This document shows, piece after piece, positions 84-49,748 of a stretch of DNA of 64,000 nucleotides. Below the pieces are notes generated by a model that searched no databases, was not told where the DNA came from, and worked only from the letters and a program-made list of their open reading frames with translations. The stretch covers positions 268,271 to 332,270 of IMG/VR virus record IMGVR_UViG_3300009703_004110, one strand, 5' to 3'. Each line of letters begins with the position of its first letter. Position 1 is the stretch's first letter. Both the position numbers and the translations under genes were made by a program.

Positions 84-569
84 TTAAGAATACCTGGGTC
101 GCTCCACACTCTTTTCTTTTTTGCCGTCATCTGACCTCCGCTCTTCTTGATTATACAATCTTCTATAGCGAATAGTCAAAACATTTTTAATATGAGTTCT
201 TACCTTCTCTGATACATCGATCTTATCAATGATATCCCAAAAATCATTCTTGGTCAATCCCATCACGTATCGGCGCGTTTTATTACTTTCCATCTTTTCC
301 AATTCAACCATTAAATTGTTAAATCGGTTTATCAAACGCCCAGCTTTATTTGCTAAATACGGATCATTTATTTCATTTAGAATTCTAGCTAAATTAACTT
401 CTGCTCTTGCATTACCAAAAGTATAGTCCTCAAGACTTACTCTGTCCTGATCTAGGCTTTCTAATTCTTGCAAGCAGTCCTCGCAGGAAATAGCCGATTC
501 TATATCGGTCCATTTCCCACGAACATGAGTTGCTCCGCAGAGTATCCTCCCCTGTATTACATAATGCAT
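84..569 (-). CDS. hypothetical protein, N-terminal Cys/His cluster
   Basis: 161-aa ORF with RBS AAGGAAAGG; H..C...CxxC pattern. Confidence 0.6.
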   Translation of the reverse strand: MHYVIQGRILCGATHVRGKWTDIESAISCEDCLQELESLDQDRVSLEDYTFGNARAEVNLARILNEINDPYLANKAGRLINRFNNLMVELEKMESNKTRRYVMGLTKNDFWDIIDKIDVSEKVRTHIKNVLTIRYRRLYNQEERRSDDGKKEKSVERPRYS

Positions 570-769: not shown

Positions 770-3454
770 TTACCCATCCAAAGTTGAAAGACAACGCTTG
801 CATGTTCCATCCGAAAGATCAGAGTATCTCCAGCACTTGTCACACTTCTCACCTTGATGCCTGCCTACCTTTACTGAGAACTCATGCGAAGCTCCGCCCC
901 AAACATTGATACCCGAAACAATAAAAGCTTCTGTTAAATCTACATGCTTGGAATAAACAGCTTTTTCGATTTCGCAAGGAGGATCGTTAACCGGAAGGTA
1001 TAGTGTTACATCCGCCTCTAGAGACTTATTAAGAACTCCATTAGCTCGTGCCTTTTCAACTTCTTTATTAACAACTTCTCTCATTTCAAAGATTGCATTC
1101 CACCTTGGCACAAGTGCCGCATCAAGGTGAGTATCTTCAGCCTCAGCCCATCCCGCCTGGAACACAGAGTCCCCAAGAAACATCGAACCAAACGTATCCA
1201 TTTCTGCCCAAACTTCTTCAGATAGATACGAACATACTGGCGCGATCATTCTAACCATATCCTGTAGGTAATAACAAAATACAGTCTGGACAGATCTACG
1301 CGCTACACTATCTGATCTTTCGACATACAACCTGTCTTTTGTGATATCCAGATAGAAGGCAGATAGTTTTTGGCGAATAAAATCCATAAGATCACGGTAT
1401 GCACCATAGAAGTCATATTCGTCATAAGCCTGGTTAAAGCGTACTTTCAACTCTTCCAACTCATGAAGCATATATCTATCAACTTCATGCATATCTTCTA
1501 ATGCAACGGAATCTGTTTCGAAATTGAAATCGGATAAGTTACCAAGAAAGAACCTGAATGTATTACGAAGTCTTCTATAATTTTCATTAACCTGATTTAG
1601 AATTTCATCAGAGATTCTTACGTCAGTTTTGTAATCTACAGATACTGTCCATAATCTAAGTACGTCTTTATTGTACCTGCTAACAACATCGTCTGGAGAG
1701 ACCACATTCCCAAGAGACTTACTCATCTTACGACCCTTACCATCAACAACAAATCCATGAGTTACAACGGCCTTGTATGGAAGCTCACTATCGCTTGCTA
1801 CCGCAGTTAGTAAGGAGGTTTGGAACCAGCCACGATATTGATCGTGACCTTCTAGATATAAGTCTGCATTTGATTTGCCAACTGCTCGGTGTGATACACC
1901 AGAGTCGAACCAAACGTCCATGATATCCGTCTCTTTTTTGAGTGAATCTACAAGTGGGTTACCACGTAGATCATACTCTAAACCAAGGGATAATCTTTCT
2001 CCAAGTAATTCTCTTGGTGACCAAGTAAACCATACCTCTGTGCCATACTCTTCAAATACTTCGAGCAATCGCGCAAAGATTCTTTGATTATAAAGAGGCT
2101 GACCATCGTGATAAAAGACAGGGATTGGTACGCCCCAAGCTCTTTGTCGAGAGATACACCAGTCCGGTCTACCAAGAATCATCCCGATCATCTTATCTCT
2201 GCCATGGGGCGGATAAAATTCAACTTCTTTAAGCGAAGCCAATGCCATCACTTCTAAAGTATCTTCTACCTTAACAAACCACTGATTGGTAACTCGAAAA
2301 ACGATTGGCTTCTTCGTTCTCCAATCATGTGGATATGAGTGAGTAAAGTCTTCTTCATAGAGGACCGCATTTAGAGACGCACGCACGCGCTTGTCTGCCT
2401 TCATATAGAAGTCGCCAGCATATACTCCGGCGAGATCATTATAGTGACCTCTTTCATCTAAGATGCAATCACTTCCTAATCCGTGTTCTTGTCCGATCCA
2501 ATAGTCATCTTCACCGTGTCCGGGAGCGATATGAACCAATCCGGTCCCCATTGAGTCGGTAACATGATGCCCAACTACAACAGGACATAGTTCGTTAGAG
2601 AATGGATGATAGTATTCTAAGCCTTCAAAGTCAGTAAATGGCTTTGTACGATAAGAATCTATTTCAAGCTTATCTACAAACTCTGTATAAAGGGCCCTCG
2701 CCAATACGTAACTTCTTCCATCATCCAATGTAAGCAATACGTATGGAACGTCTTTGCCATAAGCAACCGCTCTATTGGCCGGAAGAGTCCATGGTGTTGT
2801 AGTCCAGATTACCAGCTTAACTCTTGCAGTAGTTTCCAACTCGACATAAACCGCCTTAGCGGTCACGTCCTTATATTCAAGCTCTGCTTCAGCTAATGCC
2901 GTTTCAGAAGATGGCGACCAATAAACAGGACGCTTACCTCTGTAAACATATCCGTTACGAAACATTTCATTAAAAACTCTAAGCTGCTCTCGCTTATATT
3001 CTTCATCTAATGTTTCGTATCTATGATCCCAATCAGCATGGATACCTAAGCTTTGAAACTGACGCTCTTGTTCGTCAACCCACTTACGAGCATACTTCCG
3101 GCAAGCAGCACGGACACTACTTCCGCTACTATCTGTGGCCTCTTCCGATGCCTTTAGTTCGATTGGAAGTCCGTGAGTATCCCACCCAGGAACAAACGGT
3201 GCATTATAACCCTGCATTCTCTTTCGCTTTAAGATTGCGTCCTTAAGAACCTTATTTAAAGCGTGGCCGATATGGATATTTCCATTGGCATATGGAGGGC
3301 CGTCATGTAGGATAAATGACTCCCCGTCTTTGTTTAATGAGAGATCATAAACTTCTTGTTCGCCCCATAACTCTTCGGTATCAGAAAAGCTCTGATCGCT
3401 TGGACGCATCCCAAAGTCTGTCTTAGGAAGATTTAGTTTGTGCTTCTTTGACAT
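770..3454 (-). CDS. ileS: isoleucine--tRNA ligase
   Basis: LHDGPPYANG-HIGH, GWDTHGLPIE, WTTTPWTLP editing motif, KMSKS, C-terminal CxxC..CxxC; 894 aa. Confidence 0.97.
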   Translation of the reverse strand: MSKKHKLNLPKTDFGMRPSDQSFSDTEELWGEQEVYDLSLNKDGESFILHDGPPYANGNIHIGHALNKVLKDAILKRKRMQGYNAPFVPGWDTHGLPIELKASEEATDSSGSSVRAACRKYARKWVDEQERQFQSLGIHADWDHRYETLDEEYKREQLRVFNEMFRNGYVYRGKRPVYWSPSSETALAEAELEYKDVTAKAVYVELETTARVKLVIWTTTPWTLPANRAVAYGKDVPYVLLTLDDGRSYVLARALYTEFVDKLEIDSYRTKPFTDFEGLEYYHPFSNELCPVVVGHHVTDSMGTGLVHIAPGHGEDDYWIGQEHGLGSDCILDERGHYNDLAGVYAGDFYMKADKRVRASLNAVLYEEDFTHSYPHDWRTKKPIVFRVTNQWFVKVEDTLEVMALASLKEVEFYPPHGRDKMIGMILGRPDWCISRQRAWGVPIPVFYHDGQPLYNQRIFARLLEVFEEYGTEVWFTWSPRELLGERLSLGLEYDLRGNPLVDSLKKETDIMDVWFDSGVSHRAVGKSNADLYLEGHDQYRGWFQTSLLTAVASDSELPYKAVVTHGFVVDGKGRKMSKSLGNVVSPDDVVSRYNKDVLRLWTVSVDYKTDVRISDEILNQVNENYRRLRNTFRFFLGNLSDFNFETDSVALEDMHEVDRYMLHELEELKVRFNQAYDEYDFYGAYRDLMDFIRQKLSAFYLDITKDRLYVERSDSVARRSVQTVFCYYLQDMVRMIAPVCSYLSEEVWAEMDTFGSMFLGDSVFQAGWAEAEDTHLDAALVPRWNAIFEMREVVNKEVEKARANGVLNKSLEADVTLYLPVNDPPCEIEKAVYSKHVDLTEAFIVSGINVWGGASHEFSVKVGRHQGEKCDKCWRYSDLSDGTCKRCLSTLDG

Positions 3455-9671: not shown

Positions 9672-10283
9672 CTATTTAAAATTATACTTAGCCTTAATCT
9701 CCAAATCAAGAGACGGTATACGAATATGCTGAATCATTCCGTGACTCTTTGCTTCTTCAGGAGTCAGCCACCAATCTGCGTGACCGCGATTGTGAGTCTC
9801 GGTTAGAAAATGCTCTTCATCTTTGCCACAGTTTCTTGCCATTCTTCTGTATACAAGCTGGTTAAGTCTTTCGGTTTCTGCGGCACCAGCTTTTATTTCC
9901 TCAACCTTACCCCATTCCATACTTGAAACATCATGAATTAAGACAGTACTATTGGGTCCGGCAAAACGCATACCATCCTGCCCACAAGTCAAGAGGATAG
10001 CTCCACAACTCATAGCCTTACCTTCAACAATTGTTGCTACAGGCAAAGAGGCTGACTTAATACAATCCATCATAGCAAGCAAAGAATATACTTGGCCGCC
10101 ATATGAGTCAATTACAATTGGGATAACAGGCTGCCCTGTGCCATGAGCCTCTTCCATACTTTCAGTAAATTTCTTAACCGCATCTTCATTAAATTTATTA
10201 ACGCGGATAATTACCGGAGGTATAACCAAATCTTTTGGCTTACGTACAGTTAAAAGAGGGTCAATCTTGCAGGTCGCTCTCAT
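9672..10283 (-). CDS. clpP: ClpP-like serine protease
   Basis: IDSYGG, AMSCGA (catalytic Ser), LIHD, WWLTPEEA. Confidence 0.9.
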   Translation of the reverse strand: MRATCKIDPLLTVRKPKDLVIPPVIIRVNKFNEDAVKKFTESMEEAHGTGQPVIPIVIDSYGGQVYSLLAMMDCIKSASLPVATIVEGKAMSCGAILLTCGQDGMRFAGPNSTVLIHDVSSMEWGKVEEIKAGAAETERLNQLVYRRMARNCGKDEEHFLTETHNRGHADWWLTPEEAKSHGMIQHIRIPSLDLEIKAKYNFK

Positions 10284-11165
10284 CGCTTTCTCCCTTTGTA
10301 TTTTCTGTCAAAGCTTGCTAATTTTTGCAAGTCAATATTGGCAGGAGAATTCCTCATCTTCCCGCCATCAATAAATAAGTCTAATGCCTGATCTCTAGTG
10401 ATAATAGCCGTAGACTTATCATCTTTGCGCGGGCCCCATCCTAAGCGTAGAAGGAAGTTTAGCATAGCACCTGGATCGACTCCAGAGTCCATGTAACTAA
10501 TCATAGATGCAGCACCGTCCCGTTTTACTTAACTTCTTCTTATCTTTAAACAGAAGGCCGGTATGGGCGTATTGCGGGACTTTAATTCCTGACATTGGAA
10601 TAGTGCTCAAAAAATAATAAAGCACAATCTGCTTACCAGTATTCTTCTGGTGGTCAACACCGCGAATAACATAATTTACACCAATATCAAAGTCGATATC
10701 GTCACAGACATTGGCAAAGTTATATGTTGGCGATCCATTAGACTTAATTAAAACCATATTTGAAATATAATCAAAGTCTGATTGTCCAATCTTAATATCT
10801 CCAGCAATATTATCATGCCATGATTTGCAAGGAAAGTTGTCCCAATCCTGGAAATCTAAAACTACTGCTCCATCGTCTAATCGCTTTGCGAAACCGCCAT
10901 CAATCAGACACTCTGCTACGTGCTGATAAAGATCGAATCGGTTACTCTGATAAACGAGCATATCATAGTCAAGACTGAGCCAGTCCATAACTTTTAAAAT
11001 ATCATCAACTTTGCTTTGATCATTTCTTGCAATATCTGTATCATCAATTCTTAAGATGAATTTTCCGTCTGTAGCCCGAGCTGCCAACCAATTAAAGTAA
11101 GCGGTACGAGCCGTCCCCATATGCATATCACCCGTGGGGCTCGGTGCTATTCTTGTATTAAACAT
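10280..11165 (-). pseudogene. gltX: short glutamate--tRNA ligase (GluRS/GluQ-like catalytic domain) split by a 1-nt frameshift
   Basis: RIAPSPTG-HMGT, LRIDDTD, VIRGVDH; removing one A at 10523-10526 restores KLSKRDGA and joins the two ORFs (about 294 aa). Confidence 0.85.
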
Positions 11166-11385
11166 GCCTACACTCATAATGAAAGTCATCCAAAGTCATA
11201 GCCTTATATTCTGTGAACTCCGAATCTTTATTTAATTTATGTGCAGCCAATACAGCGGTATCTTCTTTAAAGGAAGGACCAGCAGTAATGCTCCATAAAC
11301 CAGGGTCATTACTATAAGGATTGCGAGACCAGCTTGCTACAACCCATAGATCGTAAACGCTTACGTCAGCTTCAGGTATTTCCAT
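11158..11385 (-). CDS. hypothetical protein
   Basis: 75-aa ORF with RBS GAGGCGG. Confidence 0.55.
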   Translation of the reverse strand: MEIPEADVSVYDLWVVASWSRNPYSNDPGLWSITAGPSFKEDTAVLAAHKLNKDSEFTEYKAMTLDDFHYECRHV

Positions 11386-20614: not shown

Positions 20615-20920
20615 TCAACCCCAAGTTGCTGATACAAGATAATGTCCAGGTTCAAGGTGCCCCTTTTTAATCAAGGCCATTATCATCATATTTAAACTTA
20701 CAGTTCCGTCAGAATAGTCCGTCATTTCGGTGACAGCTTCGTCTACCCACTTCTGACGTGATTTAATTATATCACTCGTACAATCGAACAGAGTTTCTCC
20801 GCCGCTATCGTGCCCAGCAATTTCATCTTCATATGGTTCACATGTGAATCCGAAATGCTCCTTGGCTAATGATAGAATATCTTCTATATCCGTCCAATAT
20901 ACTTCTAGTCTCTTTATCAT
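20615..20920 (-). CDS. hypothetical protein
   Basis: 101 aa, overlaps the stop of the RF gene. Confidence 0.6.
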   Translation of the reverse strand: MIKRLEVYWTDIEDILSLAKEHFGFTCEPYEDEIAGHDSGGETLFDCTSDIIKSRQKWVDEAVTEMTDYSDGTVSLNMMIMALIKKGHLEPGHYLVSATWG

Positions 20921-21603
20921 TTGTTTAATTCCCCAAGCTGGCCTCTAGAGTAAGCTTTGTACGTAATAGTTTTATCATTGATGTGATCATAAACTTTGCC
21001 AGCTTGAACTCTAATGGTTCTAATCTTTTCTTCGCCTCTGCCTCCAGAACCAACTTGTTGCTTACGCTTACTTCTTCTGTTCAAATAAGCCTCTCTGTCA
21101 GCTATGGCTTGTAACTTTGCAGAAATAACGCTGAGTGCATTTTCTTTATTCTGCTTTTGACTACGTTCAGATTCGCATCGCACAATAATCCCTGTTGGCT
21201 TATGCTTAATCTGAACAGCAGAGTCAGTCACATTTCTATGTTGTCCGCCAGCACCAGAACCTCGGGCAGTCTTTATTTCAAGCTCATCCTTTCTAAAGGA
21301 TAATTGTTCAGCCTTTTGAGATTCTGGCAGCACGGCGACAGTAATCGTAGAGGTGTGCACCCTTCCTTTACGTTCAGTAGGCGGGACCCTTTGCCACCTT
21401 ATAATTCCCGATTCTTTCTGAAATAACTTACCGGCATTTTTTCCGATAACTTTAAATATAATAATTCCATCCCTACATGTAATCAAATCTATATCTAACT
21501 TATTTCTTTTTGCATACTTACAATAAATTTTGAATTGAATCTTCACTAGATCTTTTGAATCTGATCCGCCTTCGCCCGCTCTTATTTCTATAATTAATGT
21601 CAT
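20917..21603 (-). CDS. RF1-like peptide chain release factor lacking the N-terminal domain
   Basis: EIRAGEGG, RVPPTERKGRVHTS (PxT motif), GAGGQHRN, ERSQ..N. Confidence 0.9.
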   Translation of the reverse strand: MTLIIEIRAGEGGSDSKDLVKIQFKIYCKYAKRNKLDIDLITCRDGIIIFKVIGKNAGKLFQKESGIIRWQRVPPTERKGRVHTSTITVAVLPESQKAEQLSFRKDELEIKTARGSGAGGQHRNVTDSAVQIKHKPTGIIVRCESERSQKQNKENALSVISAKLQAIADREAYLNRRSKRKQQVGSGGRGEEKIRTIRVQAGKVYDHINDKTITYKAYSRGQLGELNK

Positions 21604-26559: not shown

Positions 26560-26874
26560 TTAAACAAACAGGTCAAAGTGAAAGATCACTTGTGATTTTA
26601 TATTTGGTGGAAGCATTTCGAAGAATTGCTCAATAGGAATTTCTACCCTGTCGCTATAAGCTTGTCCAAAATAATATCTTACTAAAGGACTCCCATCAGA
26701 ATTTATTCCGCATATTTCAATTAGTAAGTGTGTTCCATTGACTTTATAAAAGCCGCGATATATCTGAGAAAGAAAGGGCAAATGATGGGCTTCTTCGGCC
26801 CCATCAACTACGCCATATCTATTCGGTATATTCCTATAGCTCACCTTGCTATAAGCCTCTCTAAGTATTCCCAC
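26560..26874 (-). CDS. hypothetical protein, C-terminal LDLF-module family
   Basis: ends VIFHFDLFV. Confidence 0.6.
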   Translation of the reverse strand: MGILREAYSKVSYRNIPNRYGVVDGAEEAHHLPFLSQIYRGFYKVNGTHLLIEICGINSDGSPLVRYYFGQAYSDRVEIPIEQFFEMLPPNIKSQVIFHFDLFV

Positions 26875-27389
26875 ATTTCTGCGGGAGCATTAGTTGAGCC
26901 TTGCAGCTTTGCCTTAAAGGCAGACCATTCCTTACGATACATGCCAAGGAGATTCTTTTTCTTAGTATGACAATGCTCTATGTTGGCAATTCGATCTGCT
27001 AACTTTAGAATGATTGCATCTTTAATCTCTATAATCTTGCCATGACTTTTGGCATGACGCTCCCTACGGTTCTTACCAGGCTCATTAGAGACGGCATAAA
27101 CAAGTAATGCCACGTCATCACCGAAGACTTCCGCAACCTCTTCTCTAGTCACATGAGTATCCTCAATAACATCATGAAGAATTGCGGCAAGAATCAGCCT
27201 TCTTGATCTGGCACGTTCATAGTCGTCTTCTAACCAGGGGCCAAATCCATAACGAACCAGCACTTGAGACACTTGTACAAGATGCATAACATAAGGCACA
27301 TTGCCATACATTTGATCGCCATGAGCATCAACAGCAAACTCAATTGCTTTTTGGTATTCACTATCAAACTCTTTAATACCAAACAACAT
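26841..27389 (-). CDS. HD-domain (p)ppGpp hydrolase-like protein (Mesh1/SpoT type)
   Basis: AH..Q, PY..H, AAILHDVIEDT, KLADR..N. Confidence 0.88.
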   Translation of the reverse strand: MLFGIKEFDSEYQKAIEFAVDAHGDQMYGNVPYVMHLVQVSQVLVRYGFGPWLEDDYERARSRRLILAAILHDVIEDTHVTREEVAEVFGDDVALLVYAVSNEPGKNRRERHAKSHGKIIEIKDAIILKLADRIANIEHCHTKKKNLLGMYRKEWSAFKAKLQGSTNAPAEMWEYLERLIAR

Positions 27390-27410: not shown

Positions 27411-27440
27411 ATTACCTGTCAGCTTTTCTTTCTAAGTTAG
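27411..27440 (-). promoter_or_regulatory. putative phage promoter, class A motif
   Basis: CTAACT-TAGAAAGAAAAGCTGACA-GGTAAT. Confidence 0.55.
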
Positions 27441-28906
27441 CCGCTAGTTCTCATGGTTGGAAATAAGATTACATCCCGGATAGAGGTTCGATTTGTTAAA
27501 ATCATAACCAGCCGGTCAATACCGATACCTTCGCCAGCCGTTGGTGGCATACCGAAAGTTAAAGCTCTAACGTAATCTTCATCAAAATACATTGCCTCAT
27601 CATCGCCGGCATTCTTCCTCACTACCTGAGCAGCAAAGCGATCAGCTTGATCCATCGGATCATTAAGTTCGGAAAAGGCATTTGCAATTTCCATACCAGC
27701 AACAAATAACTCAAACCTATCGGTCACCCGTGGGTCGTCATCATTACGTCTAGCAAGCGGGCTGATCTCTGTTGGATAGTGAGTTACAAACGTTGGATTA
27801 ATCAACTGATCTTCAATGTATGTATCAAAGATTAATGTAAACATTTCTCCAATAGAGTCTGGTAGCTCACTCTCATAAGCTGGATTAGCTGACTGCCAAA
27901 ATTCGTGCAAGTTTTGAATCGAATAAGGATCGCCCTCAACACCAACCTTTGTTAGCAACTCATCAAACCTGGCTTCGCCCCATTGGCCGAAGTCAATTTC
28001 AGTATCACCATACGGTCTAACTAAATTACTATAGCCAAACAAATCTCCAACCAACTCAGTAATCATATTCTGAGTCATCTTCATTAGATCACGATAAGTA
28101 GAGTGAGCCGCATAGAATTCAACAGTAGTGAATTCAGGATTGTGCTTGGTGGAAATCCCCTCATTTCTGAAATTCTTTCCAATCTCATATACACGATCTA
28201 GCCCGCCAACAATTAATCTCTTAAGATAAAGCTCTGGAGCAATTCTCATAAAGAGATCCATATCTAAAGCATTATGGTGCGTTACGAATGGCTTAGCTGA
28301 CGCTCCGCCAGGAATCGGCTGTAAGGTCGGGGTCTCTACCTCTAAAAAACCTCGATCTTCTAAGTGCCGACGTACTCCGCTAACAATCTTAGATCTTGTA
28401 ATAAAGACTTGCCTACTGTCATCATTGACTGCCATGTCTAAGTAACGCATTCGAGAACGTGTCTCTTGGTTAGTTAGACCGACATGCCTATCTGGCATAC
28501 CCGCAATATTCTTGGAATACAAATGAATCTCTGCTACATTTACAGTCAACTCACCCATGCGCGTGCGCATCATGGTTCCAGCGAACCAGACCCAATCACC
28601 AATATCCATCGCCTTCCATTCGGCAAACTGTTCTGCACCAACAGTCTTCTTTGATACCATAATCTGAATGGCAGCATCTTGACCATTTACGCGGCCAAAC
28701 CCAAGCTTACCAAGCTCATTCTTAAATCGCAATCTTCCAGCGGATGATACGGTCATATCATTCATGGCCGCAATAGAGTGCTCACTATAAGCAGTAACAA
28801 TGCTCTCAACGCTGGTGTCAAATGGTATATCATTCGGATATGGCTCGATTCCTTCTGCCCTGAGGCGTAGCGCCTTGTCTCTCATTTCTTCATTAAACTG
28901 AAACAT
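27437..28906 (-). CDS. lysS: lysine--tRNA ligase (class II)
   Basis: OB fold, FLEVETP, RIAPELYLKRL, FRNEG..HNPEFT, GMPPTAGEGIGIDRL. Confidence 0.97.
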   Translation of the reverse strand: MFQFNEEMRDKALRLRAEGIEPYPNDIPFDTSVESIVTAYSEHSIAAMNDMTVSSAGRLRFKNELGKLGFGRVNGQDAAIQIMVSKKTVGAEQFAEWKAMDIGDWVWFAGTMMRTRMGELTVNVAEIHLYSKNIAGMPDRHVGLTNQETRSRMRYLDMAVNDDSRQVFITRSKIVSGVRRHLEDRGFLEVETPTLQPIPGGASAKPFVTHHNALDMDLFMRIAPELYLKRLIVGGLDRVYEIGKNFRNEGISTKHNPEFTTVEFYAAHSTYRDLMKMTQNMITELVGDLFGYSNLVRPYGDTEIDFGQWGEARFDELLTKVGVEGDPYSIQNLHEFWQSANPAYESELPDSIGEMFTLIFDTYIEDQLINPTFVTHYPTEISPLARRNDDDPRVTDRFELFVAGMEIANAFSELNDPMDQADRFAAQVVRKNAGDDEAMYFDEDYVRALTFGMPPTAGEGIGIDRLVMILTNRTSIRDVILFPTMRTSG

Positions 28907-33947: not shown

Positions 33948-34256
33948 TTACTTTTTTGCGGAAAGAATATCTAAATAAAATAATATCTCCAAGTCATCGT
34001 CGCCAAGACCTGACATGAATTCTTCCCCATCGATTGTAGTCGCACAGCCTGTGTGATTAATTTTAACAAAAGTGACTTTGCCGTGATCTGATACAAAACC
34101 AACCTTATCAGAATCCATAATAACAACATTCATACGCCTTGGCGACGTAACTCTAACTTTTCGACTATTGATTAACGAAATATAAACGAGCATGGCCCGG
34201 CTCTTTTTCTTAGCACAATATTCTATAAAAGAAAGCTTCCGCCCAATCTTTATCAT
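33948..34256 (-). CDS. hypothetical protein, C-terminal LDLF-module family
   Basis: ends ILFYLDILSAKK. Confidence 0.6.
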   Translation of the reverse strand: MIKIGRKLSFIEYCAKKKSRAMLVYISLINSRKVRVTSPRRMNVVIMDSDKVGFVSDHGKVTFVKINHTGCATTIDGEEFMSGLGDDDLEILFYLDILSAKK

Positions 34257-34714
34257 AGCAAAGGAAGGTGGCCGGTAATCCTATCAACATCTTCAACAAA
34301 ACCTGGGCCAATTGCAACGGCTGTCTTTGTCGGAACACCATCAAACTCAGTGAATCCAGCGTCGGTGATTAAAGAGCACGGAAGATTAGCGGCCTTAGCC
34401 GCCTCATATAACTCCACTAACTCTTCTTCACTATCAACACTAACACAGATCTTAGCAAACCTTCCGGCAATCCAAGCACAGACACCCTGTAGCTTTCTGA
34501 TATAACTCTTAAGCCCCCTTGGACCGAAATGTAAATCTACTACCCCGTAAATCCCGCCTTCTTCCCAAAGACCTATATCACCACTACCCCAATCAATTAG
34601 ATCTAATAGTACAGCGCAAGAAGCATGAGCGCCTTGCGACACCATCTTACCTTTCCTCATATTAAGATCTTTTCTTATTATGATTACCTGCTTTGCTTTA
34701 TAATTTTTGGTCAT
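34253..34714 (-). CDS. pth2: peptidyl-tRNA hydrolase, Pth2 family
   Basis: KQVIIIRKDLNMRKGK..SQGAHA, ITDAGFTE, T.VAIGP, ITGHLPLL. Confidence 0.93.
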   Translation of the reverse strand: MTKNYKAKQVIIIRKDLNMRKGKMVSQGAHASCAVLLDLIDWGSGDIGLWEEGGIYGVVDLHFGPRGLKSYIRKLQGVCAWIAGRFAKICVSVDSEEELVELYEAAKAANLPCSLITDAGFTEFDGVPTKTAVAIGPGFVEDVDRITGHLPLL

Positions 34715-35289
34715 ATATTCCTCGGTGGCTTTACGGCCTCAACATTTAAACTAACCAAAGTTCCTTTGTGCCATATTTCATCTGGCAGCTCATTACCATC
34801 CTCATCATGCCTTGGAACATAATCCCTGCTCCAGTCTCTTACATTAGCATGTGAAGTTGTAAATGGATCATATCGTTTGATATTGACAAATCCCATTTCA
34901 GACAAATCTTTTTGAAGCTGGTTGAAATCCCATCCCCAACAGTGATAGTCGTAAGGATTTCTTTGGCCACCGAACATGGTGCCTCTTATCTCAGATAGAT
35001 CACCAGTCTCATTGTAGTGACGAATCAGCCCTTCAAAATCAGGAACCGAAATCCTTAGCATTCCGCCCGGTGCTAACAAATCAAGTAAGGTTGATAGAAC
35101 ATCTTTGTACTCGTGTCGTGAGAAGTGTTCTAAAACATGGCAAGCATAGATGTAATCAACACTGTTCTTTTCAAACTTTGTATGCAAATCTTTTATATCA
35201 CATATCAAATCAGTAGCGTCAGTTTCATAAATATCTATGTTTACAAAGCCTTCTATCTTTTTTGGTCCGCATCCTAAATGTAATTTCAT
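34711..35289 (-). CDS. class I SAM-dependent methyltransferase
   Basis: KLHLGCG, NID, HVLEH, L.PGG.LRISVPD. Confidence 0.85.
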   Translation of the reverse strand: MKLHLGCGPKKIEGFVNIDIYETDATDLICDIKDLHTKFEKNSVDYIYACHVLEHFSRHEYKDVLSTLLDLLAPGGMLRISVPDFEGLIRHYNETGDLSEIRGTMFGGQRNPYDYHCWGWDFNQLQKDLSEMGFVNIKRYDPFTTSHANVRDWSRDYVPRHDEDGNELPDEIWHKGTLVSLNVEAVKPPRNI

Positions 35290-35305: not shown

Positions 35306-35381
35306 TGGCACGCTGTAAGGGATTCGAACCCTTGACGCGGAGGTCTAGAATCTCCCGCTCTGACCGCTGAGCTAACAGCGC
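35306..35381 (-). tRNA. amber suppressor tRNA (anticodon CTA)
   Basis: canonical 76-nt numbering gives GGAGA-TTCTAGA-CCTCC; A31-C39 mismatch, G73, CCA end. Confidence 0.85.
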
Positions 35382-38714: not shown

Positions 38715-39482
38715 TTACAGAAACCTACTAACGTACTCTCTATCTTCTTTAAAGAGAGGAATCTCCCAGTCGATAGTCCATCTATTACGTTTGGCTATCA
38801 CAGTTTCTTTAGCCCCATGCTTCATAAAAGTCACAGGTTCTTCAAAGCTTTTACGAGTTACAGTAAATCCTTTTTGAAAATGACTTGGGACGTCTTCCCA
38901 CGGAGTACCATTATTTCTCAACATTTCTTTCATCTGCAAAACAGTTCTACCATTACATTCTTTATGAGAAAAATAATGCCTTGCATACATTGAAACAGAA
39001 TTGCGCAAAGCGTCTTGCTGTCTCCATACAAAAGCATTAACAACTTCATGCTCAGGAAGATTCCAGAACCTAGAATCAAATTTTGGTCTAGAGTCTGCAA
39101 GGCTTGGATCGCTCATAACTAATGCTGCATAAAACTCAACTGCTACAGCAGAAGCAATAACGCTATTCATCTTTCTGGTTTTATAACCAAAATAAGGCTG
39201 AGTCTGCTCTGATTCAGTATCAGTTATTAGAAAGGATATTTCATCAGACTGGACGTAAGCCATCTTACAACCTTGGATTTCTTGGCACCCAACAATGGCA
39301 CCTACAGCCATAGCCAAAACAAATTTTTCATTCCAAGGAGAATTAGCTTCTTTCTTTAGACTCTTAGTAAATTTACTAAAATTCTTTCCATCTACTCGGC
39401 CAATAACAGGAACGCCACTAACTAGCTTAAAGTTAGTTTGCTTCTCGTAACCCTTCATCCTATTTTCTAATGTATCAAACAT
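38715..39482 (-). CDS. thg1: tRNA(His) guanylyltransferase Thg1 / Thg1-like protein
   Basis: RMKGYE, RVDGKNFSKFT, YVQSDEIS, FDSR, WRQQDA.RNS. Confidence 0.93.
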   Translation of the reverse strand: MFDTLENRMKGYEKQTNFKLVSGVPVIGRVDGKNFSKFTKSLKKEANSPWNEKFVLAMAVGAIVGCQEIQGCKMAYVQSDEISFLITDTESEQTQPYFGYKTRKMNSVIASAVAVEFYAALVMSDPSLADSRPKFDSRFWNLPEHEVVNAFVWRQQDALRNSVSMYARHYFSHKECNGRTVLQMKEMLRNNGTPWEDVPSHFQKGFTVTRKSFEEPVTFMKHGAKETVIAKRNRWTIDWEIPLFKEDREYVSRFL

Positions 39483-41661: not shown

Positions 41662-42846
41662 CTATACCTCACTTACAATATTCATTCCAAGAAAAGTCAT
41701 GCCTAGTGCCAAGTCATCTAACATTGGCTGAAACAAAGCTTGTCCCTCTGGATTATTCTGAATTTTAACATCCATATAAAGTCCGTTAATTTTCTTTGCT
41801 AACTTAACCAGAGCCGTTAGTAAAGTCTTTGGATTAAGATCACTTTGTGATTTAATCAAAGCATAGATAAGCTCCGGAGACTTTAGCGCACCAGACTCTG
41901 GCTTTAGCCCGGCACTCTGTAAGCGTGCCAAAGTATAGCTCAAGTATAGGCCAGAAGATTGTTTCAGAGATTTAATCTGGTCCAAATCTAATTTCTTAGT
42001 ACTCTTTGGTGAGCTATTCAAAATGAAGCCAACTAATACATTATACGCCAAATCAGGGTTTGGAAACTCGTCAATCAGTAGATCATAAACCTCTTGGGCC
42101 ATGACGGTGTTGCCCTCCCTGCTTGACATCTTCTTCCCTTTAGCGATTACTAGTCCAAGCGGAACATGCGTAATTTCGCCCTCGGGAAATAGCTGTGCCA
42201 ACTTCTTAAAGTGCGGGCCTTGCTCCGAACCCGTTAGATATAACTTACTCTCACCATTCCAGGCTTGAGCTAGAGCGACGTCTTGCCAAAAATAGCTAGT
42301 ACTTCCATCGCTTTTAATTCCAACAACATACTCGTCGTCAGCTATAAAGCCTTTAGTACCTTCATACTTACCATTTCCGCTTACTAAAAGAGAATCGTCA
42401 TTCAATATCATATCTGATGCAAAGAAGACTGCACCATTAATATAGTAGTCAGACCACTTAAGCCATTCTTCTAGTTTGCTTAGGGCGTCTTCTTTGGAAA
42501 CATCACCATCTAATGTGTCCCCAAGGATGGCCACAAAGTCAAGGCCAATCCCCATGTTTTCAAATGCTTTGGCAATGACAAGGTTTGATAGGTGACCAAT
42601 ATGAAGGTGCTTATTTAGATTCGGACTAAACCCATCAACTATCGAATAAGCCTTAGGCTCTACAAACAGATCGTGTAGACTTATACTCTCTGGAATATTA
42701 ATGTTAGTAAACCTTCCAGACTTAACCAAAGTTAAGCTATGATAGTCTGCCCACTTACTGATCTCTTCTGATGGTTTGCCAAATACACATAAAGCAAAGT
42801 CCATCATCGGCGGCGTTGTAGCTACCTTTCCAATATCGATTTTCAT
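41662..42846 (-). CDS. argS: shortened arginine--tRNA ligase
   Basis: SPNLNKHLHIGH, KSDGSTSY..D, Q..HF, KMSSR.G, G.YL.Y..AR; 394 aa. Confidence 0.88.
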   Translation of the reverse strand: MKIDIGKVATTPPMMDFALCVFGKPSEEISKWADYHSLTLVKSGRFTNINIPESISLHDLFVEPKAYSIVDGFSPNLNKHLHIGHLSNLVIAKAFENMGIGLDFVAILGDTLDGDVSKEDALSKLEEWLKWSDYYINGAVFFASDMILNDDSLLVSGNGKYEGTKGFIADDEYVVGIKSDGSTSYFWQDVALAQAWNGESKLYLTGSEQGPHFKKLAQLFPEGEITHVPLGLVIAKGKKMSSREGNTVMAQEVYDLLIDEFPNPDLAYNVLVGFILNSSPKSTKKLDLDQIKSLKQSSGLYLSYTLARLQSAGLKPESGALKSPELIYALIKSQSDLNPKTLLTALVKLAKKINGLYMDVKIQNNPEGQALFQPMLDDLALGMTFLGMNIVSEV

Positions 42847-45888: not shown

Positions 45889-45964
45889 TGGTAGAGTACC
45901 TTGGATTCGAACCAAGAACGCCGACGTCACAGGACGGAATGATAACCAATTTCAACAATACTCC
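45889..45964 (-). tRNA. tRNA-His(GTG) with A73 and no encoded G-1
   Basis: CCGTC-CTGTGAC-GTCGG; GGAGTAT/GTACTCT-A-CCA; base -1 is T. Confidence 0.85.
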
Positions 45965-45967
45965 AAA

Positions 45968-46231
45968 TTATTGTATAAATAAATCTAAATTAAATAATAG
46001 AAAATCTTTAGCACAATTATTTATAATATCTTCATCTAATAGCCTCTCTAGGTTCATTTTAGTAGTATGACCCGTTAAAGTAAAAATTTCTCCCGGGAAT
46101 TGGCTATCTAATGTAAATGAAAACTTTGGCGATAGTTGGAAAATTACAACTAATATATGATCACGATCTTTAAAAATATAAATATTTTCATCTAGTGATG
46201 ATATAATACACAAAAATTTTTCAAAAGTCAT
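45968..46231 (-). CDS. hypothetical protein, C-terminal LDLF-module family
   Basis: ends LLFNLDLFIQ. Confidence 0.55.
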   Translation of the reverse strand: MTFEKFLCIISSLDENIYIFKDRDHILVVIFQLSPKFSFTLDSQFPGEIFTLTGHTTKMNLERLLDEDIINNCAKDFLLFNLDLFIQ

Positions 46232-46236
46232 ATTGT

Positions 46237-46683
46237 CTATACAAACAAATCCATGTTAAACATTATAAAGTCTTTGATAGACTCTGGACCAGAAATCATA
46301 ATCTCTTCTGTGGTTAATATTTGTGAAGTATCAACTATAGATTTATTGACACCAACTAGATAGGGCCATTCATCTGAATCTTGCCTTGCTCTTTCTAGTT
46401 CACGAAGCTGCTGATATTCCGGTACGTTGCCAAGCCTGTCAAAATTATACTTAATCCAAATGGGATTATCCTCCTTAAAGTGTCCAACTAAAACAAGATT
46501 TGTATGATTTACACCAAGGTAAAAATTGTGCGGCAGATTATGTCTATGCTTTCCATAAATCTTTATCCAGTCGAGCCCACTTGAGTAAGTTCTTCTATGA
46601 CTTATAGTCGATGGAATTAAGTTTGTAAACATACCGCTGTCTTTAGCAGTATGATACAACTCACTTATTCTATCTGGATTCAT
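46237..46683 (-). CDS. hypothetical protein, C-terminal LDLF-module family
   Basis: ends IMFNMDLFV; ATGA overlap with the upstream gene. Confidence 0.6.
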   Translation of the reverse strand: MNPDRISELYHTAKDSGMFTNLIPSTISHRRTYSSGLDWIKIYGKHRHNLPHNFYLGVNHTNLVLVGHFKEDNPIWIKYNFDRLGNVPEYQQLRELERARQDSDEWPYLVGVNKSIVDTSQILTTEEIMISGPESIKDFIMFNMDLFV

Positions 46684-47273
46684 TTCTTCCTTGCAATCAT
46701 TAGCCTTTCTAGACCTAAGGCCCATCCTGCGCCACCATCATAAGGGCCGCCCCCAAGGATCTGCTTCTTGGTTTTAACAGAAGAAATCTCAAAGGTCTTT
46801 CCTGAGTCATCATATAGATTCAAACCCCTCTTCGCTCCATCTTCTAGAGACCAAGCGTTAGAAGGCAGAACCTTTCTGAATAGCTTAATGGCATCACGCC
46901 TCGTATCTCTACGAGCGTCAAGCGCATTATCCATCAGAAGTTCTACTCCAATCTGTGTGAACTCTCTTAGTCGTTCTGCATCAGTAGTCGACTCATTTCT
47001 AAAGCATCGAGCAACATAGTAAACTTTGCTCGCTCCAAGCTTTTGAGCGCCCATTCCTCTGACATAGTTGGTGACCTCTGGAGTCAACACAACACCATTA
47101 CCTAAGTCAAACATTCTGTTCTCAGTTCCCTCTGTACAGGAAGCGAAAACTTCTTCTTTGGCCAGGATTGGGATTTCAATATAACGGTAACCCCATGCTT
47201 CCAGCCAGGCTGAAATCTCAGCGATGAAGTAACCTCCGGTCAAGACTCTCATTAGCAGAGTAGGCCCTGACAC
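46680..47273 (-). CDS. minimal HisRS-like class II synthetase catalytic core
   Basis: GY..IEIP, L.PEVT, CFRNE..RLREFTQIGVE, GGG.YD, GWALGLERL then stop; 197 aa. Confidence 0.8.
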   Translation of the reverse strand: MSGPTLLMRVLTGGYFIAEISAWLEAWGYRYIEIPILAKEEVFASCTEGTENRMFDLGNGVVLTPEVTNYVRGMGAQKLGASKVYYVARCFRNESTTDAERLREFTQIGVELLMDNALDARRDTRRDAIKLFRKVLPSNAWSLEDGAKRGLNLYDDSGKTFEISSVKTKKQILGGGPYDGGAGWALGLERLMIARKK

Positions 47274-47290: not shown

Positions 47291-47938
47291 TTAGACATTT
47301 TTCTTTCCCTCTGTTGTTTTAGCCATTTTGGCCTCGACTATCATTTGAATTAATTCAATCTGACCTTTCAGAGCGTGCTTAATATTCTCATAAGCCAACT
47401 CTTGGTCTGGAAAACGATTCCTTGCCGCTTTAAGCATCGGCAAGATATGCTGCTTGCATTCTTCCATATAAGCCACCTGCTTCTCGCAAGAGAAGACTCC
47501 TGGCATCGTTTGGAAGTTGTGTACTCTGTCGCATCCCTTTACTATAGATGCAATTGGATTGGACGCCATATCTTTGTAATACTGTGTTTGATCCTTCTTG
47601 TCACCGCGATACTTCTTCGTCAAAAGCAAGACACCATCTGCAACTTGCTCACCAAACATAACACGAATAGTTTCAATTGGTACTTCATAGTCTTCAACTA
47701 CATCATGCAAGAGGCAAACAATGAATGTCGCCTCTTCATCACGCAAACCAGTCAAGGTTCGTGCATAATGCGTAATTGATATCTGGTGATGAAACTCAGG
47801 AGTTACCTTATCTTTTCTCAGTCCGTTGTGATATTCCGATGCAAACTCAAGCGCCTCAACAGCCTTGAAGTATCCCTTTCCCAAAAGAAAGGCTCTAATT
47901 CGTTCGCGATGAATGATGAACTTAGAAACAGATGTCAC
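47291..47938 (-). CDS. HD-domain (p)ppGpp hydrolase-like protein
   Basis: H.G.RKD..TP..H, LLHDVVED, K..DRVHN; GTG start after GGAGG. Confidence 0.85.
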   Translation of the reverse strand: MTSVSKFIIHRERIRAFLLGKGYFKAVEALEFASEYHNGLRKDKVTPEFHHQISITHYARTLTGLRDEEATFIVCLLHDVVEDYEVPIETIRVMFGEQVADGVLLLTKKYRGDKKDQTQYYKDMASNPIASIVKGCDRVHNFQTMPGVFSCEKQVAYMEECKQHILPMLKAARNRFPDQELAYENIKHALKGQIELIQMIVEAKMAKTTEGKKNV

Positions 47939-47964
47939 GACGCCTCCGTTAGTTATTTTAAATA

Positions 47965-48047
47965 TGGAGCGGGTGACGAGAATCGAACTCGCCATGTTTA
48001 AAACGCCTGCTTGGAAGGCAGGTTCCCCACCTTGGGGACTCACCCGC
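47965..48047 (-). tRNA. tRNA-Gly(TCC) with an enlarged variable region
   Basis: CCTGC-CTTCCAA-GCAGG, U73, 13-nt variable region. Confidence 0.85.
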
Positions 48048-48083
48048 ATATTATTCTTTATACTACTGACGCAGTATTTTAAC

Positions 48084-48943: not shown

Positions 48944-49389
48944 GCCGTTACCTGCAAGATATCAAGATAGAACAAAATACTTTCCTTGTCTTTATTACCA
49001 AAAGCGATATCAATCACATGGTATCGGTCTGTCAGTCGAATGGAGTATTGATCGCCCTTTAGAAATAACATTAGAGTTGCCAAATATTACTCGGCTGCCG
49101 TCTCTACTCGGTCTTAATATAACATTAGAAGTTCCAACCCAAAAATCAAGGGACTTTTGCAAATGATTGTCAAAGAGTCAATCTCTACAAGCCTCTCCGC
49201 AAATCTGATATAATCACCCGGGCTATAGCTATTTACTGAACCACTAATCACTTCGGCATGTGTTCCACCAATCTGTGGGTGAATCTTACACTTACCTCTA
49301 CTGCACGGGTTCTTTGGCTTGCTATAGAAAAACTTTCGTAATATACTTCCTATAAGATCCATCGACCTTCCGTGCGGCTATATGTTAAA

Positions 49390-49466
49390 TGGCTGGGGTA
49401 GTAGGGTTCGAACCTACAAACCTTCCGGTTCAAAGCCGGATGCTCCACCAGTTGAGCTATACCCCA
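49390..49466 (-). tRNA. tRNA-Gln(TTG)
   Basis: T1-A72, TCCGG-CTTTGAA-CCGGA, GCCA end. Confidence 0.93.
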
Positions 49467-49748
49467 TTAAGTTAGAAGATCCATTTCATAAATTAAGAAG
49501 CTTCTAATAGAATCAGGAATTGTATCCCAGATATCTGCCGCCCGCCCCTGGCATATTAAGCGACCTGCCATATCTCTAATTCCCAATCTAATCTGACTTG
49601 TAGTTGCCAGTATACGAATATGATAGTTGTCAAATATAAACTCTGATCTATTCTCAGATTCATAATGCAATTCACAATGCTCTTCCAGTCGTACAGTTAA
49701 TATTTCTTTCTTGACTTTGGACTCTACTGCTTCTGACCAAGTATCCAT
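49467..49748 (-). CDS. hypothetical protein, C-terminal LDLF-module family
   Basis: ends LIYEMDLLT. Confidence 0.55.
   Translation of the reverse strand: MDTWSEAVESKVKKEILTVRLEEHCELHYESENRSEFIFDNYHIRILATTSQIRLGIRDMAGRLICQGRAADIWDTIPDSIRSFLIYEMDLLT

Follow-up and report, generated by a model that had tools for sequence, protein, structure and literature searches.

Can a synthetase that retains little more than its catalytic core still serve a particular tRNA, and is its short length a property of the family or a local accident? This question was raised by a 64,000-nucleotide stretch of a huge-phage genome of roughly 390–420 kb (hereafter the window), in which an earlier note described a 197-aa HisRS-like ORF stopping right after motif 3, a GluRS-like gene of about 294 aa without an anticodon domain, a 394-aa ArgRS with a reduced N terminus, and full-length IleRS and LysRS. 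The note proposed that such anticodon-blind enzymes could charge atypical tRNAs, a minihelix or a suppressor tRNA, or act like GluQ, HisZ or EpmA on noncanonical targets. We found that the observation holds, with corrections of detail for the GluRS-like and ArgRS-like genes, whereas the interpretation is only partly supported. The features that we examined were as follows:

46680..47273 (−), mini-HisRS, a class II catalytic core with motifs 1–3 and the HisRS histidine-binding motifs, without insertion domain or anticodon-binding domain; likely start at the ATG at 47252 (190 aa)
45889..45964 (−), tRNA-His(GUG) of the type without G-1 (T at −1, G1-U72 pair, A73, encoded CCA, 9-nt D loop; type defined in PMC3064791), 718 nt downstream of the mini-HisRS and its presumed substrate
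46237..46683 (−), small ORF (about 148 aa from the ATG at 46683) whose start overlaps the mini-HisRS stop (ATGA); not conserved next to minis of other clades
47291..48049 (−), HD_4 (RelA/SpoT-type hydrolase) gene directly upstream of the mini-HisRS, a neighbor conserved within the window clade only
10497..11189 (−), GluRS-like catalytic domain, piece 1 (HIGH region to KLSK), ending at a +1 frameshift in an A4 run
10280..10504 (−), GluRS-like catalytic domain, piece 2, continuing after KLSK in another frame
41662..42846 (−), compact ArgRS-like protein (394 aa)
770..3454 (−), full-length IleRS (comparator)
27437..28906 (−), full-length LysRS with its OB anticodon-binding domain (comparator)
38715..39482 (−), Thg1-like protein (tRNA-His guanylyltransferase family, N-terminal domain only)

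Short length is a trait of the mini-HisRS family

To determine whether the HisRS-like ORF is a truncated copy, we examined its boundaries and its relatives. The ORF is 197 aa from a GTG, but relatives and gene callers start at the ATG at 47252, giving 190 aa. Pfam tRNA-synt_His matches at 8.6e-11 over residues 19–121, and motif 1 (invariant P35), motif 2 (FRNE, residues 91–94), and motif 3 (GLER, R190) are present. The stop is a TGA 7 codons after R190, and a second in-frame stop, TAA, follows 4 codons later. We found 206 close relatives of 141–226 aa and about 60 further mini clusters that outrank full-length HisRS, and 69 environmental, phage, and genome loci (63 groups at 90% identity) carry complete minis that end 0–8 aa after the family profile. 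These minis end with TAA (28), TAG (21), and TGA (20), which, together with the second stop in the window ORF, rejects stop-codon read-through or recoding as the cause of the short ORF. A megablast of 8 kb against 50,697 phage genomes returned no match.

In a tree of 50 minis and 41 full-length HisRS, the two groups are split by one branch (SH-aLRT 99). Alignment with Escherichia coli HisRS shows clean deletions of the insertion region (between roughly residues 165 and 250), which has no counterpart in any mini, of about 12 residues before motif 3, and of everything after about residue 325. These clean, family-wide internal deletions reject a gene split by a homing endonuclease. No anticodon-binding domain was found among all ORFs of 150 aa or more, nor among 55 further ORFs of the window. 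We likewise found no conserved partner gene: the ORF after the mini often overlaps its stop, but 47 such ORFs fall into no shared family. No informative domain fusions were found, and the extra length in longer members is an intein (in one member), a RhuM fragment, or N-terminal extensions.

The other synthetases of the window

The GluRS-like gene was correctly described in substance, but it is not one ORF here: a 230-aa ORF and a 74-aa ORF are separated by a +1 frameshift in an A4 run just after KLSK, and the same frameshift is in a second public contig. Joined, the pieces give about 296 aa, and intact relatives are 277–365 aa, nearly all 280–310. Only the catalytic domain is present (positions 1–318 of 470 of the bacterial GluRS profile; piece 2 matches positions 253–315), and no anticodon-binding domain follows because ClpP starts at 10283. 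Although GluQRS (YadB) is likewise a GluRS catalytic domain of about 290–300 aa without an anticodon-binding domain, piece 1 scores 126 bits and intact relatives 144–160 bits on GluQRS models (TIGR03838, NF004314, NF004315) whose cut-offs are 250–277, compared to 198 and 268–283 bits, respectively, on bacterial GluRS. The gene is a truncated GluRS and not a GluQRS ortholog.

The ArgRS-like protein is 394 aa, and the 120 best of its 533 relatives are all 376–412 aa. It lacks one insertion and most of the N-terminal tRNA D-loop-binding domain (only about 50 residues precede the core), and it scores 64.9 bits on TIGR00456 against a cut-off of 261.65. However, conserved HxGH and KMSSREG motifs are present, ArgRS structures are the top fold hits (E = 1e-16), and a C-terminal helical domain aligns to the anticodon-binding end of ArgRS. 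A single-sequence search of the PDB returned nothing, but a profile search aligned the protein to Plasmodium falciparum ArgRS residues 115–592. IleRS (894 aa; TIGR00392, 809 bits; Anticodon_1 present) and LysRS (489 aa; 618 bits against a cut-off of 468; OB domain present) are full length. EpmA/PoxA is a LysRS-derived core without the OB domain; because the LysRS-family gene of the window is full length and the mini is HisRS-derived, the EpmA reading fails.

The note had named full-length homologs as the outcome that would refute its observation; we looked for them, and for all three short proteins the homologs share the short lengths. Anticodon-blind is correct for the HisRS-like and GluRS-like proteins but not for the ArgRS-like protein.

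Active site, tRNA-His neighbors, and the motif-2 loop

We next asked which parts of the HisRS active site remain. Equivalents of E. coli E83, T85, R113, E115, R121, F125, Q127, E131, R259 (the Arg of RGLDYY), Y264, Y288, and R311 are invariant among 39 close relatives, and R123 is kept in at least 90% of them; the histidine-binding motifs PExT, RGLxxY, and GGxY are retained (in the window protein E66, T68, Q107, E111, R149, Y154, and G175-G176-x-Y178, all invariant among the same 39 relatives). All of these residues stay invariant or at least 90% conserved among 31 distant minis, except E115, R123, and Y264, where most variation is E/D or not quantified. R121 and E115 correspond to the Thermus thermophilus residues that read C74 and A76 (PMC4357726). 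The AlphaFold2 model (pLDDT 86.8) is a class II core on an antiparallel sheet, for which HisRS is the top hit (Foldseek E = 4e-12; VIA Z = 18 over HisRS residues 14–318). Structure comparison alone cannot separate HisRS from HisZ or PylRS cores, since all score Z of about 17–18, and the window protein fails the curated cut-offs of both hisS (TIGR00442, 58.8 against 286.75 bits) and hisZ (TIGR00443, 61.1 against 271.65 bits).

The gene sits next to tRNA-His more often than chance allows: the nearest tRNA to a mini is tRNA-His in 12 of 41 loci that have a tRNA within 1.5 kb, against a 6.9% background (P = 1.3e-5), although about 40% of mini loci with tRNAs in reach show no tRNA-His within 10 kb. 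The motif-2 loop covaries with the acceptor end of the neighboring tRNA-His. About 20 loci with the canonical loop (E-R/K/N-P/T-Q..GRYR) lie near a tRNA-His with encoded G-1 and G1-C72, usually with C73, whereas all 8 nonredundant loci with the window-clade loop (one residue longer, E-S/T-T-T..ERLR, and Pro at the R287 position) lie near a tRNA-His with U72, 7 of them with A73-CCA. The same loop/tRNA covariation is known for cellular HisRS (PMC3937112, PMC3064791). The window clade is one lineage on a long branch, so the covariation counts as one evolutionary event, or at most two, and could reflect shared ancestry. Phosso (Sinorhizobium host) and a Pararhizobium tRNA array combine a canonical-loop mini with a G-1:C73 tRNA-His, and both hosts belong to the clade whose own tRNA-His lacks G-1. 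In three complete huge-phage genomes the mini is the only HisRS-like gene.

A putative HisRS that reads only the acceptor end

Our favored explanation, which we consider somewhat more likely than not, is that the ORF encodes a naturally minimized, anticodon-blind but cognate HisRS. The analysis itself establishes that the protein belongs to a large, single-branch family of 180–230-aa proteins, found in huge phages and in some alphaproteobacterial tRNA arrays, that keeps the residues binding ATP, histidine, and the CCA end of the tRNA (with the exceptions among distant minis given above). What we infer, from sequence, predicted structure, and gene context alone, is that it forms histidyl-adenylate and transfers histidine to tRNA-His, recognizing only the acceptor end (positions −1, 72, and 73), mainly through its motif-2 loop, and ignoring the anticodon. 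In this view, the loop in the window clade has been remodeled together with a switch of the phage tRNA-His to the alphaproteobacterial type (U72, A73, no G-1), and the pair would give the phage its own histidine-charging capacity. In relatives such as Phosso, the phage tRNA-His is of a type the host enzyme charges poorly, so there the pair would be self-contained. The evidence points to the co-encoded tRNA-His and not to the suppressor tRNA or other atypical tRNAs. Designed HisRS fragments of 119–145 aa still activate histidine (PMC3060492), and insertion-domain contact mutants keep most of their activity. However, cellular HisRS of the no-G-1 type depends heavily on the anticodon (91–1000-fold, PMC3064791), which this protein cannot read.

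Other readings are less likely. The core could make histidyl-adenylate but pass histidine to a protein, a carrier-protein arm, or a small molecule, as other stand-alone synthetase cores do (EpmA, AsnA, amino acid:carrier-protein ligases; reviewed in PMC9437257). All modules that grip the tRNA body are gone, many mini loci have no tRNA-His nearby, and bacterial copies exist outside obvious phage contexts, for example in Azospirillum (locus L137); we nonetheless consider this reading unlikely given the covariation, the enrichment of tRNA-His neighbors, the conserved C74- and A76-contacting residues, and the absence of a shared family among the 47 downstream ORFs. About as doubtful is a noncatalytic histidine- or tRNA-binding role, either as a HisZ-like regulator of histidine biosynthesis or as a sensor or decoy for uncharged tRNA working with the adjacent SpoT-type HD hydrolase to control the host stringent response. 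The window protein scores about the same on hisZ and hisS, some databases name relatives HisZ, HisZ structures are tied with HisRS in fold comparison, and the HD_4 neighbor is conserved in the window clade. On the other hand, the protein keeps E115, R121, and R123, which the HisZ in PDB 3od1 has lost, together with R259 and the motif-3 arginine; more typical minis score higher on hisS than on hisZ (134 versus 86 bits); no hisG was found among the window ORFs scanned; and the HD_4 neighbor is absent in Phosso, LR745206, and locus L012. The HisZ reading, like the GluQRS and EpmA readings, fails the tests applied here.

We regard as still less likely that the mini works only as a heterodimer with the host full-length HisRS, borrowing its anticodon-binding domain or poisoning or retargeting the host enzyme. 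Motif 1 with its invariant proline is kept and class II synthetases are obligate dimers, and a homodimer prediction gave no verdict, which is no evidence either way. There is no direct evidence for such pairing, the family occurs in phages of very different hosts with one conserved interface region while host HisRS types differ, and the covariation is with the phage tRNA and not with any host protein. That the three short genes are functionless, decaying remnants of captured host synthetases is very unlikely: the GluRS-like copy is frameshifted, but hundreds of relatives have conserved lengths and invariant catalytic residues in all three families, and the minis form one old, diverse branch. 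Decay is already contradicted for HisRS and ArgRS.

Compared to bacterial HisRS (E. coli hisS, PDB 1KMM/1HTT; T. thermophilus 4RDX), the mini shares the class II core fold, motifs 1–3, and histidine-binding motifs but has about 45% of the length and a shortened loop before motif 3. HisZ is also a HisRS-derived core without an anticodon-binding domain, but HisZ proteins are roughly 300–400 aa, keep the insertion domain, and have no adenylation activity (PMC9437257), and the mini sits among tRNA and translation genes rather than with hisG. Designed HisRS urzymes (Li et al. 2011, PMC3060492) and the natural GlyRS urzyme-like fragments (PMC11602164) are likewise minimal class II active-site cores without the insertion and anticodon-binding domains. 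The urzymes are laboratory excerpts with low activity, whereas the minis are a natural, strongly conserved family, somewhat larger because they keep the RGLxxY and GGxY segments and motif 3. PylSc and the PylRS catalytic domain are stand-alone class II cores of similar size class that do not read the anticodon and are among the top fold matches, but they belong to a different family with a different amino-acid pocket, and the sequence match is confined to motifs 1–2. The reduced GluRS and compact ArgRS are parallel cases of size-reduced phage synthetases. Literature searches for a prior description of truncated phage HisRS, or for phage Phosso, found nothing.

A broader possibility, which we rate slightly less likely than not, is that the minis are natural urzyme-like synthetases of 190–220 aa that, with a co-encoded tRNA-His charged through its acceptor end alone, form portable, host-independent histidine-charging pairs; such pairs would move among huge phages and bacterial tRNA arrays and retune their motif-2 loop when the acceptor identity of the tRNA changes. 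Automatic annotation currently names these genes either histidyl-tRNA synthetase or HisZ, and neither label fits. If active, the pairs would offer very small synthetase/tRNA combinations, in two acceptor-end types, for engineering orthogonal translation. The protein would be the smallest natural HisRS known to us and would show what a class II synthetase can lose (insertion domain and anticodon reader) and still be kept by selection, which bears on models of early synthetase evolution that so far rest mostly on designed fragments. It would also explain how huge phages can carry tRNA-His genes of a type their host enzyme charges poorly.

Genomic setting and length of the HisRS-like ORF

The window is a translation-gene island of a huge phage, with nearly all genes on the minus strand. 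Its translation genes include IleRS, EF-Tu, ClpP, IF3, a release factor, LysRS, peptide deformylase, PTH2, and EF-G, and it additionally carries NAD-salvage genes, RNA-repair genes, and three short synthetase-like genes. ARAGORN made 20 tRNA calls, one of which, a plus-strand tRNA-Arg, is probably a mirror-image false call because Rfam supports only the minus-strand tRNA at that site. Among 55 ORFs of the window, one matches Tad4 (Thoeris inhibitor, E=3e-33) and others match thioredoxin, RNase H, endonuclease VII, RNA ligase, and AAA_33. The window's own proteins are recorded on contigs of 391 and 420 kb and a 99%-identical IMG/VR contig is 332 kb, while no phage in a collection of 50,697 genomes is close at the DNA level. 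The features discussed in this and the following section are:

46680..47273, minus strand: the HisRS-like ORF (mini-HisRS)
47291..48049 and 26841..27389, minus strand: two HD_4 (RelA/SpoT-type hydrolase) genes
45968..46231, 46237..46725, and 49467..49748, all minus strand: three small ORFs with a shared C-terminal peptide
49373..49449, plus strand: tRNA-Arg(tcg) called by ARAGORN, over 49390..49466, minus strand: tRNA-Gln(ttg)
35306..35381 (minus strand), 34253..35289, and 20917..21603: a tRNA with a CUA anticodon (amber suppressor, called "Pyl" by ARAGORN) next to PTH2 and a methyltransferase, and a 228-aa release-factor-like gene that matches only the last part of the PCRF domain plus the RF-1 domain

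The HisRS-like ORF is 197 aa from a GTG, but relatives begin at the position of the ATG at 47252, which gives 190 aa. It matches Pfam tRNA-synt_His only over residues 19-121 and ends with TGA 7 codons after the motif-3 arginine, with a second in-frame stop 4 codons later. The earlier note had described this ORF as a miniature synthetase stopping right after motif 3, and that observation holds. Its other statements on the window's synthetase genes also hold with one correction, namely that the GluRS-like gene is not a single ORF here.

To determine whether the short length is local or a family trait, we searched for relatives in several collections and found that it is a family trait. A tblastn search found counterparts of 196-211 aa in Sinorhizobium phage Phosso (469 kb) and in two uncultured phages of 635-642 kb. 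A search of 5.8 billion proteins gave 206 relatives of 141-226 aa, several of them on contigs of 290-420 kb. A profile search of 1.84 billion cluster representatives ranked about 60 clusters of 190-225-aa single-stretch matches (E=1e-28 to 1e-13) ahead of the first full-length HisRS (400-430 aa, two stretches, E about 1e-12). Finally, a metagenome scan together with viral and genome loci and the window gave 69 loci (63 groups at 90% identity) with complete minis, whose ORFs stop 0-8 aa after the family profile ends, whereas full-length HisRS loci in the same scan show two profile stretches and tails of 50-100 or more residues. All three stop codons are used, so recoding is not the cause of the short length. 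In a maximum-likelihood tree, 50 minis and 41 full-length HisRS fall on opposite sides of one branch (SH-aLRT 99), and the window clade sits on a long branch inside the group that holds Phosso.

Minis also occur in isolate alphaproteobacterial assemblies (Thalassospira xianhensis, Pararhizobium sp. BT-229, and Azospirillum lipoferum), two of which carry the gene inside arrays of His/Pro/Leu/Tyr tRNAs; the Thalassospira contig (423 kb) has a topoisomerase-like gene nearby and may itself be a huge phage or plasmid. One metagenomic family member, P0148 (564 aa), is interrupted by an intein with a LAGLIDADG homing-endonuclease domain. No conserved partner follows the gene, and no free anticodon-binding domain is encoded in the window. 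In the window clade only, an HD_4 (SpoT-type) hydrolase gene precedes the mini and NAD kinase follows; the gene at 47291..48049 is a conserved upstream neighbor in three related contigs (L004, L006, and L008). The three small ORFs end in the same C-terminal peptide, F-[LI]-x-[FY]-[NE]-[ML]-D-L-[FL], and the DNA under it is also similar. Two of them stop right at the 5' end of a tRNA gene (tRNA-His, tRNA-Gln), and the motif recalls the sliding-clamp-binding pentapeptide.

Anatomy of the mini-HisRS

An alignment with E. coli HisRS shows three clean losses: the insertion domain, between roughly residues 165 and 250; about 12 residues between the GGxY motif and motif 3; and everything after about residue 325, which is the anticodon-binding domain. 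What remains keeps the whole active site. In window numbering, with the E. coli equivalent after the slash, the retained residues are E66/E83, T68/T85, R92/R113, E94/E115, R101/R121, R103/R123, F105/F125, Q107/Q127, E111/E131, R149/R259, Y154/Y264, Y178/Y288, and R190/R311. These are invariant in 39 close relatives, or at least 90% conserved in the case of R103, and most stay conserved in 31 distant ones. In the T. thermophilus HisRS-tRNA structure, the equivalents of R121 and E115 read C74 and A76, and mutants of the insertion-domain contacts keep most activity (PMC4357726). The AF2 model is confident (pLDDT 86.8, pTM 0.83) and is a class II core. Foldseek places E. coli HisRS first (E=4e-12), and VIA-align gives Z=18.0 (rmsd 3.5, 184 residues aligned) to T. 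thermophilus HisRS residues 14-318, although HisZ and PylRS cores are tied within one Z unit and the fold alone therefore does not choose among them. A homodimer prediction yielded no call in either direction.

We next considered whether the protein could instead be HisZ. The window protein scores alike on the two NCBIfam models (59 bits on hisS and 61 bits on hisZ), far below both cut-offs, whereas a less derived mini (P0126) scores 134 bits on hisS against 86 on hisZ. The solved HisZ of B. halodurans (3od1) has lost E115, R121, and R123 in the aligned segment, while the minis keep them. In addition, HisZ has no adenylation activity (PMC9437257) and keeps the insertion domain. We therefore do not file the protein under HisZ.

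The GluRS-like and ArgRS-like genes

The two other short synthetase-like genes of the window are reduced in different ways. The GluRS-like gene is in two pieces:

10497..11189: GluRS-like piece 1
10280..10504: GluRS-like piece 2
10497..10530, minus strand: +1 frameshift in an A4 run, just after KLSK (144..175 in the second public contig, L095)

Piece 1 ends in KLSKTGRCCIYD followed by a stop, and in another frame the sequence reads on as RDGAAS into piece 2. One A too many in an A4 run separates the two frames. The same run is in the IMG/VR contig, so it is unlikely to be a random assembly slip, and because both pieces still look conserved, the split reflects either a recent inactivation or ribosomal +1 slippage. 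At least 120 relatives are intact, at 277-365 aa and nearly all 280-310, many of them on contigs of 290-420 kb. They score 268-283 bits on bacterial GluRS over profile positions 1-318 of 470, but only 144-160 bits on GluQRS models. This is a catalytic-domain-only GluRS, not a GluQRS orthologue.

For the ArgRS-like gene, the 120 best of 533 relatives are 376-412 aa, on contigs up to 727 kb. Conserved HxGH and KMSSREG motifs are present, and the profile aligns to P. falciparum ArgRS residues 115-180, 259-407, and 441-592. The AF2 model (pLDDT 90.7) hits ArgRS structures first (E=1e-16). It is a compacted ArgRS that has lost most of the N-terminal domain and one insertion but keeps the anticodon-binding-type helical domain. 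The earlier note had inferred that these short synthetases are anticodon-blind and might charge atypical tRNAs or act like GluQ, HisZ, or EpmA, and this interpretation is only partly supported, since the ArgRS-like protein is not anticodon-blind and neither the HisZ nor the GluQRS assignment is retained.

The neighboring tRNA-His and the proposed role of the mini-HisRS

Two further features of the window are:

45889..45964: tRNA-His(GUG), 718 nt downstream of the mini-HisRS
38715..39482, minus strand: a Thg1-like gene (only the N-terminal domain was detected)

The tRNA-His gene has T at -1, a G1-U72 pair, A73, an encoded CCA, and a 9-nt D loop. That is the tRNA-His type that lacks G-1, known from Rhizobiales, Rhodobacteraceae, Caulobacterales, Hyphomonadaceae, and most SAR11, in which the identity elements are the anticodon, U72, and A73, and the motif-2 loop of the cellular HisRS has co-changed (PMC3064791; PMC3937112). 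The Thg1-like gene occurs in a phage whose tRNA-His has A73 and no encoded G-1, and its product might add G-1 or repair tRNA 5' ends. Across 63 nonredundant mini loci, 41 have a tRNA within 1.5 kb, and the nearest tRNA is tRNA-His in 12 of these, against 6.9% of all tRNAs in the loci (binomial P=1.3e-5).

The motif-2 loop of the mini also tracks the acceptor end of the neighboring tRNA-His. About 20 nonredundant loci have the canonical loop (E-R/K/N-P/T-Q-x-G-R-Y/W-R) and lie near a tRNA-His with an encoded G-1 and G1-C72, mostly with C73. All 8 nonredundant loci of the window clade have a loop one residue longer, of the form E-S/T-T-T-x-x-E-R-L-R, with Pro at the position of E. coli R287, and lie near a tRNA-His with U72, 7 of them with A73-CCA. 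The loop positions that changed (R116, P117, and Q118) are the ones tied to G-1:C73 recognition in cellular HisRS (PMC4357726; PMC3937112). The caveat to this comparison is serious, however, because the window clade is one lineage and the pattern represents one evolutionary switch, or at most two, rather than many. Of note, one metagenomic contig (L023, 4718..4870) carries both tRNA-His types side by side (G-1:C73, and U72/A73 without G-1) next to a canonical-loop mini-HisRS.

Automatic annotation already calls these genes "histidyl-tRNA synthetase" or "HisZ," and the huge-phage survey notes phage synthetases in general (PMC7162821). A 2022 review of synthetase paralogues lists only HisZ for HisRS (PMC9437257), and our literature searches, which reached few subscription-journal papers, found no description of this reduced family. 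The nearest concepts are the designed HisRS urzymes, which activate histidine without the insertion and anticodon domains (PMC3060492), and natural GlyRS urzyme-like fragments (PMC11602164). The family-wide length, the three losses, and the conservation of the active site follow directly from the sequence comparisons, whereas charging of the cognate tRNA-His through its acceptor end alone is inferred from neighborhood and covariation, and we consider this reading only somewhat more likely than not.

A further inference concerns orthogonality with the host. Phosso infects Sinorhizobium, a member of the clade whose own tRNA-His lacks G-1, yet its tRNA-His has G-1, C72, and C73 and sits two genes from a canonical-loop mini. 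Similarly, a Pararhizobium isolate genome carries a canonical-loop mini beside a 15-tRNA array that includes a G-1:C73 tRNA-His. In Phosso, LR745206, and LR756502, the mini is the only HisRS-like gene. For the Caulobacter enzyme, U72C costs 91-fold, and E. coli tRNA-His is a substrate only after transplanting identity elements (PMC3064791). We infer that such tRNAs would therefore be poorly charged by the host and would need their own enzyme.
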